A stretch of 64,000 nucleotides of DNA from Paragordius varius (lineage: Eukaryota; Animalia; Nematomorpha), in NCBI GenBank assembly GCA_964247055.1, contig OZ176055.1:6882001-6946000 (forward strand), written 5' to 3'. Shown piece after piece: positions 46,432 through 56,100 of this stretch. Below the pieces are notes generated by a model that saw only the letters and a list, made by a program, of their open reading frames with translations, was not told the origin of the DNA and made no database searches. The translations under genes were made by a program, and so were the position numbers. How positions within the stretch are numbered: position 1 is the first letter of the stretch; the number at the start of each line of letters is the position of its first letter.

Positions 46432-49365
46432 CTATGAGCAAAAATTACAAAAAATGATTATAATGCCTGGTAAATATATACATAATATATTTCCATATTT
46501 ATTATCAATTAAAGAGAGCAGTCCTATTTTACGGCCTTAAGGCTTAGGAACTTGTTTAAAATACTTAAGGCTTTCGTTTAATTAATAAAATTAAAGTGTT
46601 TAATATATCATACATTTCAAAATCAGTGAGGATTTAATAATATCTAACGGTGAAGCTACTCGATTAAATTATTTCTAACAGAAAAATTAATATTATACAG
46701 ACAAAATCTAAATCATTTTTTTAAATGACAATGATCATATGTTCGAAATTTGATGTGTCGCTTGAAAAAAAATCTGTAGATTTTGAATGTAAAAATAAAA
46801 TTATTTTTAACGATATTAACCATATATTTTTCAATGCATTCATAAAAAGTTGGGTTTCAGAGTAAGGTATAATTTAATAAACCGAATTAAAAGATCAGTG
46901 TCAACGACCATTTATGAAAATAAATATATAGCTTTAATCGTAAAATATTTGGTTAGTTTTTATAGATCAGGGGTGGTAAAAAATAAATTTTTCCATATTA
47001 AGTTTCAGCCACATTTTTGTTGATAGTATATTTAAATTATTCATGATTCAATACAAATATGAAAGGTTACACGTTGATATTCACGGGAAAAATCCAATTA
47101 TCAATTTAATTTCACACAGAAAAGAATGCAATAAACATGCAATAATATCATCAAATTAGTGACAGCCTCATAAATATTCATGATAAAATGAAATGATGAC
47201 AATCAGAATTTGCAGGAATCCTCGTCATATATTTTGAAGTAATAGAATAAAAATTATGGCAAAAATATATCAAAGCCCTGTCTTTTCAATCTTTATTCAT
47301 TTAATAGTATCTATTAAATATCCGAAGGCTATTGAATAACTACAAAGTTTACAAGTTTAGACGGGAATTACGGAGTTTTTTTAACTTACAAAAAGGAATA
47401 TTTTTATGGTATTTGTTGTCCCAATCTAATGTTTTTGGCCATTTCTTAAATAATCGGATTATGGGTAATTTCAAAAATGACACCAAAAGATACCATTTAA
47501 GTAAAAAACAAGGAATCGAAAGGAACAAAGTTTTTAAAACCGGAAAAGTTTAATTCGTAACCGGAAGGAAAAGTAAAACCCGACTTAAAACAGTACCAAA
47601 TTTTATCGATAAAATTTGTTTTTGACTATTAAAAATATGAAATATGTTCTGATTACTAAAATGCGTTTTTTAGACTTTTTATATTCTTTATTTTTATCCA
47701 ATTGTATAGCAAGCTGCCTTTAATCATAATAATTTATGTAGTTTAGATTAGGGGTGTCCAACATTTCCGAGACTTTACGTGTCGCCCGCGAAAATTTTGT
47801 GGAAATCCCTAATTTGAAAAATGCTTTCAAAATCTTAATTTATTTCTCAAACAATTTTTATAAATAAGTCTATCCAAATTGCTAAAACTAGAAAAATTTT
47901 ATAATGTGTTTGCTTTTATCAGTCTTATGTGTGAAATCTATTAAATTATATATGAAGGCCCATTTTTAATGCGGCACACCCGTTCGATGTCTAACATGCA
48001 GCCCGTGAAGTAATTTGAGTTGGATACTCCTGGTTTAATTTACATATTTCTGTTTCTAATATTTAAACTTAAATTTACGAAAAACAAATAAAGTTTTTAC
48101 CGAATTTTTGGACTTTCTTTGCATGGAATCGTCTCTGTCGGCATACGGATTAATTATATTTCACTTTGGATATAATATTAAAAATGTGATGATTCTTTGA
48201 TGTATTAGATATTTAAAAAAATAGGATAAAACAGAAAAAATGTTTTTTGACCAAATATTTTAGGCTATTCCTAATTCCACACCAATTTTTGCAACGAGAG
48301 AAAGATTATAGGCAAAAAAATGGAATAAGGAAAGATGTGAGAATCATGAATAAAAATATTTCCAATATTTATTTCGTATGTCTATTTCTATACATTTATG
48401 ATTGCAATTGATGCAAATATGACAAACAAACAGTAAGACGAGAGATGAAGCCTACATCTATCTATCTATAAGAAAAGACAAATCCATAATATATCTAAAA
48501 ATTCTTTACATTACTATTGATTATATCAAAAATTACTAAATAAAAAATTTTAAAATATTCGGATGCTTTGGGGAAAAAAATTTTCGTCATATTTTGAAAT
48601 TTTTTTTCTTTAACATATTTTTTAGAGATATGCTGATTGTATCAAGGTCTGGGTTGTCTACTACTTGTTAAAAGGTGAACAATGGAAAATGCCTAAATTT
48701 ATGAATACCATTCATTTATTGTTATTTTTTGTAAATTCCCTAATTAAATTTAAAATATACATATTTTATTCTTAAATTGTCAACGTACACTTTATTAATT
48801 ATGTTTCTTACGAAGATTGTAATTTTTGTAGCTTTTAATGTTAACATTTATAAATTAGCAACAGGAGAATAATATATCTTGTGTTACTATCAAAATTTAC
48901 AATTGATTTTAAGTTATTTATATAATTTTTCAAAAAGAGTTATGATTGATCTTGCTTTAAAAAAACTAAGAATGAGAATGAACAATTTTAACCATCATTT
49001 ATTGTAAGTACCAGAGACGATTTCGTTTTTCTTTAATCGCACAGTATGATATGATTATTATTCCCATATTGAAATATATGGTGTTTTTTCAAAAAAATTA
49101 TCATAGAAAGCATTTAGGGTTAAATAGTGGAAAACTGGTATATTCATAAGGCTATTTTTTTGAATTTTCCAAAATTGAGCAATTTGAATGGATGAAACGC
49201 ATTTAGTGTAATAATACATTTTTTATGAATGCCATATAAATCAATATCAATTCCCTATAACAGTTGTTAAAATCCGTAATATAACGATAAAGGATAATTA
49301 AATAGTATTAAATAAAATTATAAATATAAATTATAAACGATATTTGAAACCCTTCGTCAATAGTA

Positions 49366-49408
49366 ATCGCAGACTAGTTTCGTGCTTGTTAGCACTCATC
49401 AGTACGAC
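49366..49408 (-). ncRNA. Minimal type I hammerhead ribozyme (left arm)
   Basis: The reverse complement reads GTCGTA CTGATGA GTGCT AACA AGCAC GAAA C TA G TC TGCGAT, identical to 49671-49713. Confidence 0.85.
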
Positions 49409-49670
49409 AAAACTATTTGACTTGGGGTTTTCACATATCGATTTCGTATATATATCCAACTTTGCAATTTTGGTATAAATGCAGTTGGTTTAACGAATTT
49501 AAATTAAATTTAATGGAATTTGTGAAAACTAAACTGAAAATTTGAAAATAAACTGAAAATTCATTAAATTTAATTTAAATTCGTTAAACCAACTGCATTT
49601 ATACCAAAATTGCAAAGTTGGATATATATATACGAAATCGATATTTGAAAACCCCAAGTCAAATAGTTGT

Positions 49671-49713
49671 GTCGTACTGATGAGTGCTAACAAGCACGAA
49701 ACTAGTCTGCGAT
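49671..49713 (+). ncRNA. Minimal type I hammerhead ribozyme (right arm)
   Basis: Stem I GUCGUA/UGCGAU (6 bp, 2 GU), core CUGAUGA, stem II GUGCU/AGCAC, GAAA, palindromic stem III ACUAGU, GUC cleavage triplet (cut after 49707). Confidence 0.85.
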
Positions 49714-51970
49714 TACTATTGACGAAGGGTTTCACATATCGTTTATAATTTCTATTTATACACTCATTTAATTCTATTTAATTATCCTTTATCGTTATAT
49801 TACGGATTTTAACAACTGTTATTACAAAACATAACCAATCCGTTAATTACCATTATCAATTCCCTATGTTTTCCATTATAATATATATGTATATATATTT
49901 TGCCCGTTATAATGTTTGCTTTATTTATTGTGATATCTATTATATAAGTTATAATATTTTTTACCTATATATCAAAATCATTAACGTGGTTTATTTGTTT
50001 TGTTGAAAACATCGATCTTTTTCGTAAAAAATAGTAATAAAATTTTGCTAAAAAAATTAGTCAAAAAATTTATTACCATTCCCATTTAACAATATTTTAA
50101 GGGTTAGTTGTTAGTGTATTTTCATTGTCCTTACACAAATTTTTACCAAAGATTTTCGACACACCTTTCCCCCACACTTTTTTACAACTTTTTAATGCAA
50201 TCGTTATGGTCTAACCTAACATAATACAAGTGTAATAGCTATATATTTTTTGAATAGCCTAGTTAATTGAGATTTGCATTGAAAGAATCTCAATATTATT
50301 CAAGCTTAATTATTTGTAAGCGATAATTGACTTTTATCCCGATTTTAGAGAATTAAACTCGCAATATTTTTCAAGTTATCCCACTTAAAAATTTCAAGAG
50401 CAGACTTATGACCAATGAATTCTATATATGTTTTAAAATGTAAACCTAACTAAAAATTAACCACGCATTAATACTTACTTAACTAGGGACAAATATAAAT
50501 TATTACATCTCTATATCCTCTCTGCAATTAAAATGAGATGTATTCAAAAATGCTAACTAGGGTTAAAATTAAACTTGAGATCGGTTGAATTTACTTATTT
50601 ACGTCATTGGCCTACTAATTTAGTTTATCCAAAATTATTTTAAAAAAGTTATCCATTAATGGAGAGAGATACTATGAAATTTTATTTTCAAATAAGTACA
50701 ATAAACTTGCACTAAATATTTATTGCGATAAGTGATGCTTCTATAATTCAGATTTAGATAGAGTTAATATAAAATTATGGGTTTTTTAAAAAGGATAGAA
50801 ACATTACTCGTTAAATAAATGCCAAGTATAATCAAAGAATGCCTAAATCTGAGGGTAACAATGCAAAAATATAAAAGCTTGTATATATTTTGGCTATATT
50901 TTATAAATATATATTAAAACACCTTATTTTTTAAAATTTTTAAAATATGACCTAACGTCATGAGAGATCATGGTAAAAAATCTTGTTTATAATAATAAAA
51001 TTTTGTTAAATGATATATATTTTTGATAATATCGCTTATAGGTTTTATGTACCACATGATATTCAGTCACAATGGATTTAATGTCATTAAATTGGCTTCA
51101 TACATAATTATATTTTGTTGTTCCATAATTTAACTATGTAGGAATACAGTGATAAAGCTGGAATGAGCCTGGCAAAAAAAGAGCATTTTAAATTGTTTAA
51201 AACAAATTTTTTGACACAATATAATATATTATCACTTCATGCTATTTTCACTTTTTTGTCCACGAAAACATAATTTTTTTCGGTCAAAATGCGAAAGAAG
51301 CTTGTTTTGGGCACCCCTTTAAATAATTCAGTCGTATTTTTCAGAATTCTGCCGGTTATAATTTCATAAGATATATAAACCACAAAAAAGGATCATAACA
51401 TTAAATGTAAAATTTAGCCGAAGCCAGAAATTGGAGCCAATATTGGATTCGGAAAAAATAATTTTTTCTGATTACAGTTGTATATTTTTTTAATGATGGT
51501 TTAACAATATTATTTCCTAATATTTATAGCTAATCTCATGCATTTATTTTTTGCCATTTGTACAAGATAAAGCCTTATAACGCGATTTTCAAAGTTTCGG
51601 TTTTAATTATTTCAAATCAATCCGAATAACTGGTTAAAACTGGGAGCAAATTTATTTTTAAAGCCTGATCTCACAATAAAGATATATATTAATTGAAACC
51701 ACCCCTTTAAAAAATATCATTGAAATAATTTAGTATTATCTATATTTTATCCAATCTCTTTCTTGTTAAATCTAAACTTGGATCCCATTTTACTTAGAGT
51801 AAAAAATATTATTGGTTTCACAATGCTGACCAAATCCTTAATCTGTTGAATTGCAGTTCCGCAATTATCAAATCATGTGATCGACAACATACAACAGTCC
51901 TATGAACCAAAATTTTTAAAGGACCAAAAAAATATTTACCGGTAAATTTTTGGTTGTGCACATTTGCAGA

Positions 51971-53549: not shown

Positions 53550-54128
53550 CTATTTAGTATATTTTGTTAAATCTAACGGTTTATCGTAACCCATAAATTT
53601 GGAGTAATAACTTTTATCAAGAAAATCATCCCTGTTAATGACAACAGGTCGATCTTTGATCTTTAGGATGCAAAATGGGCTAGGATTCGTTGTATTTATA
53701 TCAGAAGCATTAAAATATAAAGCTTTTTTGATAGGAATTATACTATTATATATTTGGTACATAAATTCAGATGGATGATCTTTAGGACATTTCCAAATTT
53801 GCAGGATTAATCGTTTGGTAATTAAATTAAACCAAAAAGGGTTTAGTACAAATATGGTGTATATAACAGCGAGAAAATATTTCAAATACATAGGATAGTT
53901 TTCAAACGCATTGCACATATCGTTGAGTAACACAACTCCCACACTACTTGAAAATATCATGGTGTATTTAATTAATTTTAATTGCCTAGCCATGTTAAAT
54001 GAATATATCAGGGTATGCGAGCTATCATATTTGGAATTTCCTTTTATAAGAAGATTTGCGATTGTCGAAACAGAATAATGTCTTGAAAATTTTAAAGGCT
54101 TATTGATTAAACTTTTTAGCAAAAGCAT
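53550..54128 (-). CDS. TMEM70: TMEM70, mitochondrial ATP synthase assembly factor (intronless, 192 aa)
   Basis: Basic N-terminal presequence, LIYSFNMAR (human LIYTGNMAR), two hydrophobic segments, C-terminal MGYDK. Confidence 0.8.
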   Translation of the reverse strand: MLLLKSLINKPLKFSRHYSVSTIANLLIKGNSKYDSSHTLIYSFNMARQLKLIKYTMIFSSSVGVVLLNDMCNAFENYPMYLKYFLAVIYTIFVLNPFWFNLITKRLILQIWKCPKDHPSEFMYQIYNSIIPIKKALYFNASDINTTNPSPFCILKIKDRPVVINRDDFLDKSYYSKFMGYDKPLDLTKYTK

Positions 54129-55297: not shown

Positions 55298-56100
55298 TCA
55301 TTTTTCTTCACACCATTCATTCTCTTTACGTATTTGTTCCTCTTCACTGGGCGTAAAATCATTTTTTATGTTAAACGTTTTTCGGATTTCTTCAGGCGTT
55401 TTACCTTTAATCATGTTTGCAACCGTTTTGCAGGTGACGTCAAGTAGCCCCTTAATATCCAAATAATTTGCTGCCAAGATTAGTTCAAACAGAGTTCCCT
55501 GATCAACTTTAAGGAAATCCATATCCCAACTACTAATATCATCAGTTCGTTTTTCTCGTTCTTCATCTTCAAGAGAACCAGGGCCACCAGCACCGGAACC
55601 AGGGTCATCTTTGTGATGTGTAGCCCATTGAATGACTTTTTTGAGGATGGCGGCATTGACATTAGGGAGCGGGACTATATCATCGTCACTGACACCTGTT
55701 TGATGATTAGCGGTTGGATCTAATTTTGTGGAATATAGGAAAGAAAATCATAAAAAATATATTCTAATTTACAATATATATATATATATATATACCATAT
55801 CATATCAGATATGATTAAATTTTAATTGTTATATACTTCAATAAAATTAAAGAAACGGATTAAATACTAAATTGAGACATTAAAAAAGATATTGACTGCA
55901 TTTTTTCAGATTTTAAACAAATATCTCAAATATAGCCTTTTCAATAAAATCATTTATAAATTTAACAAACCTCCATCATTCATTGCACCGCCGCATAAGT
56001 CATCCAACATAGTTTTTATCGTTCCTGATACTTTGGCAACTTCAACATCGACATCGAATACTTCACCGTCAGATGATTGCAATTTTATTGTAGAGGGCAT
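55298..56100 (-). CDS. SKP1: S-phase kinase-associated protein 1 (183 aa)
   Basis: Exons 56100-55971 and 55719-55298: [66 protein letters not shown]. Confidence 0.97.

Follow-up and report, generated by a model that had tools for sequence, protein, structure and literature searches.

A stretch of 64,000 nucleotides from the nematomorph Paragordius varius (assembly GCA_964247055.1, contig OZ176055.1, positions 6,882,001 to 6,946,000 of the forward strand; hereafter the window) carries, between positions 49245 and 49867, a palindromic insertion with one hammerhead ribozyme motif in each of its two arms. This insert is very probably a dead-end copy of a 455-nt hammerhead retroelement devoid of any open reading frame (ORF), that is, a non-autonomous Penelope-like element (PLE) equivalent to the non-long-terminal-repeat (non-LTR) retrozymes of animals. 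It measures 609 bases and lies between two direct copies of the 14-mer TATCAATTCCCTAT, at 49245-49258 and 49854-49867, where paralogous empty sites have a single one. Within these boundaries, two 5′-truncated copies of the 455-nt unit are joined 5′-to-5′ at about 49557-49561. The left copy (49259-49561, minus strand) covers unit positions 152-455, matches the natural unit of another locus, L032, at 96.1% and carries no tail; its outer end is a fixed terminus, AACAGTTGTT, that recurs in six of the eight other aligned head-to-head copies and is truncated in the remaining two. The right copy (49557-49821, plus strand) covers unit positions 192-455, is 95.9% identical to the natural unit and runs into a tail of 32 nt (49822-49853, plus strand), which corresponds to the first ~32 nt of a next unit and is found on the right side only. 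Seen as a palindrome, the insert has an outer pair of inverted arms (49257-49455 against 49624-49822; 199 nt, 95% complementary) and an inner pair (49447-49521 against 49556-49630; 75 nt, 97% complementary), which combine into arms of about 263 nt each around a 34-nt centre. This apparent loop is simply the 40-nt excess of the longer left copy over the right one. The longest ORF overlapping the insert encodes 68 amino acids, as expected for AT-rich non-coding DNA. The original prediction, which was made from the letters of the window, is thus borne out as regards the 14-bp duplication, the one-sided tail (given there as ~33 nt) and the lack of an ORF; the inverted arms, which it put at ~255 bp, are also there, though to call them near-perfect was slightly generous at 95-97% complementarity.

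The insert lies as a discrete insertion inside an older dispersed repeat and is bordered by a target-site duplication (TSD) of 14 bp. The left part of this repeat (48920-49244) has 35 other matches in the genome, at 67-84% identity, and the right part (49868-50100), contiguous with the left one in paralogs, has 59, the matches of both parts together ranging from 67 to 89% identity. By comparison of coordinates, the matches to the left and right flanks overlap in ten paralogs by exactly 14 bp, the length of the duplicated 14-mer. A search for the junction pattern recovered two of the empty sites at the sequence level, C8:2836587-2836614 (TAATCAA-TATTCATTCCCTAT-GTTTTCC) and C3:195670-195697 (TAATCAC-TATCTATTCCCTAT-GTTTTCC), and both show left flank, a single 14-mer and right flank without interruption. 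The single 14-mer anticipated for an unoccupied site is therefore present in paralogous form, in two paralogs by sequence and in ten by coordinates. An orthologous empty site was not found in the contigs of four runs labelled as other organisms, and no contig skips the insert. The run of organism B contains the unit family in abundance, and those of organisms C, D and E contain it as well. One contig from organism E (run X8; window positions 49824-50017) spans the right junction without differences, which implies that this run carries the same insertion. Runs X5-X13, under eight other organism codes, contain part of the element's words, and 301 flank bases are identical in the run of organism B. 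Given the identity across the junction in organism E and these flank bases in organism B, some of the run labels may stand for one and the same species or one very close to it, or for samples in which it is present.

Each arm holds a minimal type I hammerhead, the left one at 49362-49413 on the minus strand and the right one at 49666-49717 on the plus strand. The window contains their 31-nt core, CTGATGAGTGCTAACAAGCACGAAACTAGTC, exactly twice, at 49677-49707 (plus) and 49372-49402 (minus), and shuffled sequences give no occurrence at all. In both arms the core elements follow one another in the correct order, with CUGAUGA, GAAA and the GUC triplet. Stem I has 6 bp (GUCGUA/UGCGAU, two of the pairs being G-U) and stem II has 5 bp (GUGCU/AGCAC) closed by the loop AACA, whereas stem III is reduced to the palindrome ACUAGU placed directly before C17. 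Cleavage is predicted after the C at 49707 on the plus strand (between 49707 and 49708) and after the C at 49372 on the minus strand (between 49372 and 49371), in agreement with the positions given in the original prediction, whose claim of one type I hammerhead per arm, with core, stems I and II and GUC site, is likewise confirmed. As modelled, a single copy is unable to close stem III, while two copies can close it through pairing of their ACUAGU palindromes; the double-hammerhead structure has a computed free energy of -25.0 kcal/mol, not far from the -28.0 kcal/mol of the minimum free energy (MFE) structure of the unconstrained dimer.

How widespread is this motif? With a strict hammerhead pattern, 220 sites come to light in the genome versus 3 in the reversed control. 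Among the 100 matches listed, all 14 opposite-strand pairs less than 1 kb apart are arranged minus-then-plus, that is 5′-to-5′, and none 3′-to-3′; the hammerheads are oriented outward. The genome also contains a second hammerhead family, CUGAUGA-GUCC-ACAAAAA-GGAC-GAAA-CGCG-UC. Its stem II (GUCC/GGAC) differs at the third pair, which changes from G-C to C-G (GUG/CAC to GUC/GAC), and its stem III changes from ACUAGU to ACGCGU, with both central bases different and self-complementarity retained. These compensatory changes, read from sequence comparison, support the notion that hammerheads of this kind act as dimers. Inside the first family, variation is too low for covariation to show: over 35 instances we count 0.012 differences per site in the hammerhead and 0.023 in the flanks. 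Of the first 100 matches, at least 15 belong to the second family (for example at G000:C1:3529125, C2:5641672 and C2:14440617/14441195), which includes head-to-head pairs. A third, hammerhead-like motif, recognised by pattern only and built around the 4-nt palindrome AAUU, lies at locus L043, about 270 nt downstream of the ORF of a PLE endonuclease. An Rfam scan of ten PLE loci found no hammerhead.

The unit to which the two arms belong forms an ORF-less family of well over 100 copies. Searching the whole 110-Mb assembly gave 146 matches from 449 candidates, most of them single units and some 444-455 bp apart; the further copies that were to be expected do exist, and they come as single, tandem and head-to-head arrangements. 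The full natural unit, deduced from loci L032 and L031, is 455 nt long, and the tandem period is 444-455 nt: L031 consists of 2.4 copies with a 444-nt period and L032 of 1.7 copies. With numbering that starts at the first tail nucleotide, hammerhead cleavage would fall after position 341 and the unit ends in ...AACAACTGTTA at 455. Over 21 loci, the copies are found as single 5′-truncated units, as 1-2.4 tandem units, and as tandems preceded by an inverted 5′-truncated copy. Nine head-to-head copies were aligned together with their flanks, the one in the window included, and each has a different centre junction and its own duplication of 13-15 bp (TATAAAATAATATT, AATATTAAATTTT and TTAGATATTTATA are examples from other copies). 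In about 13 of the 14 head-to-head or compound loci the tail is present at one end only, and the opposite outer end is the fixed terminus at unit position 455, cut short in three loci. The tail covers unit position 1 to about 33-47 in most of the other copies and is 20 nt in L032, while the tail-less arms may be as short as a few tens of nucleotides. The exception is L007, where both sides carry tail sequence; L034 has a shortened tail-less end. Six independent tail-bearing copies (L002, L003, L006, L015, L019 and L028) start at unit position 145/146, TAGAGTTAATTTTCAG, which directly follows a small hairpin (TCTAGG...CCTAGA) and lies 12 nt upstream of an initiator-like motif, TCAGTT. This position might mark a favoured 5′ end of the RNA, a start of transcription or a stop of reverse transcription.

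These traits can be set against what is known from other systems. PLE insertions are described as 5′-truncated partial tandems, often with an inverted 5′-truncated copy beside the upstream pseudo-long terminal repeat (pLTR), and with a tail of 30-40 bp, which is often confined to one end (Craig et al. 2021, PMC8557442). The TSD, the inverted 5′-truncated copy, the one-sided tail and the tandems found throughout the family match this published signature, and it is on this match that we assign the insert to the PLE/retrozyme type, as the original prediction had done; the window copy is the inverted variant of the standard PLE architecture. The unit family shares with endonuclease-positive (EN+) PLEs the TSD, partial tandems, an inverted 5′-truncated copy, a one-sided tail of 32-47 nt, a hammerhead within the repeat and AT-rich targets. 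It differs from them in that the unit has only 455 nt, no reverse transcriptase (RT) or GIY-YIG ORF and no established similarity to the 3′ ends of the autonomous PLEs seen here. Metazoan non-LTR retrozymes, on the other hand, consist of small hammerhead repeats in tandem, flanked by TSDs of more than 4 bp, and PLEs are their likely mobilisers (Cervera and de la Pena 2020, PMC7229834). The small non-coding unit, the type I hammerhead, the low GC content, TSDs longer than 4 bp, the tandem copies elsewhere in the genome and the inferred dependence on PLEs are all common to them and to the unit family. Unlike these retrozymes, the window copy is head-to-head and not tandem, and its minimal hammerhead is loop-less, in contrast to the classical type I hammerhead with a short looped stem III. 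In this respect it resembles the minimal hammerhead ribozymes (min-HHRs) of PLE pLTRs, which are found in pairs on opposite strands, 100-700 bp from one another (Cervera and de la Pena 2014, PMC4209133): the CUGAUGA...GAAA core, the absence of a stem III loop, a self-complementary stem III and the spacing of opposite-strand pairs are shared. Stem II of the window motif has 5 bp without a bulged base and stem I has 6 bp, whereas the min-HHRs of Schistosoma have 7-8 bp in stem II and 4-5 bp in stem I.

If the unit is mobilised by PLEs, does the genome encode the corresponding enzymes? GIY-YIG and RVT_1 profile searches revealed EN+ PLEs (RVT_1 plus C-terminal GIY-YIG) of several lineages, with open frames of up to 788 aa; a 613-aa frame has RVT_1 followed by a C-terminal GIY-YIG, the canonical order of EN+ PLEs, and a protein search with the endonuclease added further lineages that are 35-60% identical and have open frames of 520-730 aa. 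Elements of one lineage, PLE-A, form head-to-head pairs at the loci checked (L038/L039, L044/L045 and L042/L047); the two arms are 98-99.8% alike, the tail, on one side only, has about 30 nt, and the duplications span 8-11 bp. These inverted pairs are young autonomous EN+ PLE copies. For the window insert, which had also been called young, the label is relative and finds no support, as divergence is 3-5% between its arms and about 4% between the arms and the natural unit. In a second lineage, PLE-B, the endonuclease shares about 33% identity with its PLE-A counterpart. At its locus L043, positions 689-2206 (G000:C5, at about 6.762 Mb) hold a head-to-head pair of PLE-B 3′ fragments with a TSD of 13-14 bp (TTATAAATATAGT) and a one-sided tail of 20 nt. 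On the grounds of TSD length, PLE-B-like elements are the better candidates for partners of the unit family. Fragments of the PLE-B endonuclease, at 84-90% identity, were also seen on at least seven contigs, at some 8-9 kb from the contig end (G000:C1:8777, C2:8806, C5:7881, C7:7788, C28:8470, C3:14411682 and C4:14188621); this similar distance suggests that the contigs share a subtelomeric repeat with a PLE fragment inside it.

The published work on PLEs allows a model of how an insert such as this one might have arisen. A PLE RT/GIY-YIG protein acting in trans would nick both strands of an AT-rich target, 13-15 bp apart, and both nicks would prime reverse transcription, which would begin at two neighbouring positions inside the element RNA. 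The resulting pair of cDNAs would then converge, stop at arbitrary points and be joined head-to-head. The template would be a multimeric or circular RNA, as the insertions longer than one unit indicate. As for the RNA itself, the minimal hammerheads of two units, or of two RNAs, might pair through ACUAGU into a double hammerhead that would cut after GUC and release unit-length RNA, as described for retrozymes. The model leans on in vitro work published in 2024 on PAc of Anolis, in which reverse transcription starts from two adjacent internal RNA sites, the tail is the sequence between them, and the protein cleaves and extends both DNA strands (PMC11167929). By analogy, the tail of the window insert would be the stretch that separates the two inferred start sites of reverse transcription. 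The insertions agree with this two-start-site, two-strand model of PLE integration, and they agree as well with a proposal of 2026, argued from vertebrate data, that animal retrozymes are non-autonomous PLE derivatives (Li, Clavereau and Pollet, preprint, bioRxiv 10.64898/2026.07.22.740005).

Several observations weigh against reading the insert as a PLE-dependent retrozyme. Of the autonomous PLEs examined in this genome, none was found to have the arm or the 3′ end in common with the unit, so that the autonomous RT plus GIY-YIG element with a common arm that had been anticipated did not materialise. The PLE-A 3′ ends have no similarity to the unit (78-187 of 500 shuffles reach the score), and the match of PLE-B is collinear and statistically weak, with 82 of 2000 shuffles reaching it (p ~0.04). 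No endonuclease match adjoining a unit copy was seen in the genome, the nearest lying about 1.2 kb away on C4. With regard to the ribozyme, the Rfam model Hammerhead_HH9 matches both arms at 26.6-26.7 bits (E ~0.001), well short of its gathering score of 52, so that a search with hammerhead models does pick out both arms, though below the threshold of the family; the deficit is explained by the model expecting a stem III hairpin where no loop exists here. Published min-HHRs cleave weakly in vitro and are thought to act as dimers (PMC4209133). The words of the element occur in none of the RNA runs searched, and the matching runs are all contigs. Finally, the 5′ ends of the copies are not clustered at the cleavage site, beyond the usual excess of short copies.

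Could another reverse transcriptase have moved the unit? It might be a non-coding retroelement similar to a short interspersed nuclear element (SINE), mobilised by the enzyme of a long interspersed nuclear element (LINE) or RTE element, with the hammerhead as a mere processing signal. There is no shortage of possible donors, as a first look gave 1,712 RVT_1 candidates and many of the 150 that were scored have long open frames, and the fact that no PLE shares the 3′ end of the unit speaks in the same direction. However, target-primed reverse transcription by LINEs does not yield the PLE signatures seen here, namely the one-sided tail of 33-47 nt, the obligatory head-to-head orientation (14 of the 14 listed pairs) and the partial tandems (PMC8557442), the 3′ end of the element lacks poly(A) or a simple repeat, and the same architecture is present in the PLE pairs checked in this genome. 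We therefore regard a LINE-driven origin as improbable, although it fares best among the alternatives.

Is the palindrome itself a selected device? The original prediction proposed that it acts as a built-in switch, and on this account a hairpin RNA would turn the ribozyme off or feed small-RNA pathways, thereby regulating the family or a host gene. Each strand is indeed calculated to fold into a near-complete hairpin (MFE -376 and -380 kcal/mol) that would mask both hammerheads, and inverted-repeat copies of transposons are generic sources of double-stranded RNA. But arm lengths and centres differ in every insertion, so that the insertions have no particular hairpin in common; the mechanism of integration accounts directly for the arrangement; and the window copy is about 4% decayed and sits inside another repeat. 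The different centre junction of each head-to-head copy, together with the existence of single and tandem copies, argues that the palindrome is an integration by-product and that the 455-nt unit is what propagates. A selected function appears slightly more doubtful than the LINE origin, and the proposed switch finds no backing. The window copy is most likely without function, and a read-through transcript would be expected, from folding, to form a hairpin of about 263 bp that masks both ribozymes. Least probable of all is a purely DNA-level object, that is, a miniature inverted-repeat transposable element (MITE) or foldback transposon with terminal inverted repeats, or a palindrome left by replication or repair, for although long inverted arms inside a direct duplication would suit it, the symmetric terminal inverted repeats of a MITE or foldback element are absent, the ends are asymmetric with a tail on one side only, the centre junction is different in each copy, single-arm and tandem copies of the unit exist, the TSD length varies between 13 and 15 bp, and the unit is directional with its hammerhead always outward.

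Returning to the insert as a PLE-dependent retrozyme copy, the regularity of the copies invites a further idea, which we put forward tentatively and think rather less likely to be right than wrong. Because exactly one end is tailed in about 13 of 14 loci and all 14 listed pairs are 5′-to-5′, integration might proceed on both strands in a coordinated manner, each of the two nicks invariably being primed from an internal RNA site different from that of the other, and the cis-signal for PLE reverse transcription might reside in the last ~100 nt of the 455-nt ribozyme RNA. An asymmetric dimeric ribonucleoprotein is a possible agent of such coordination. If this were true, the family would be a natural record of PLE integration and would provide an ORF-free minimal substrate with which to dissect PLE retrotransposition, in a phylum without a described one; and if the near-constant one-tail rule holds genome-wide, the insertions could define the minimal RNA substrate for PLE reverse transcription. 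Apart from this, the insert is a member of an already known type of element and the case itself is ordinary. What it adds is one well-resolved, hammerhead-bearing and PLE-dependent non-coding family in an animal lineage poorly studied for transposons. The unit family also accounts for a class of small palindromes in this genome, and its many young and short insertions with readable junctions make up a clean natural data set of modest value.

As for the surroundings of the insert, the original prediction had placed it upstream of Homer exons, possibly in intron 1. This context is not upheld, as a WH1/EVH1 profile search of the genome gave no match in the window and matches on another contig only. 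Ten nearby ORFs were compared with Pfam, and the only matches were Skp1 and a weak one to TMEM70. The recognisable neighbours are hence a TMEM70/TMEM186-like ORF on the minus strand (53550-54128; 20.7 bits, just under the cut-off) and, also on the minus strand, an exon encoding the Skp1 dimerisation domain (55298-55522; 108 bits).

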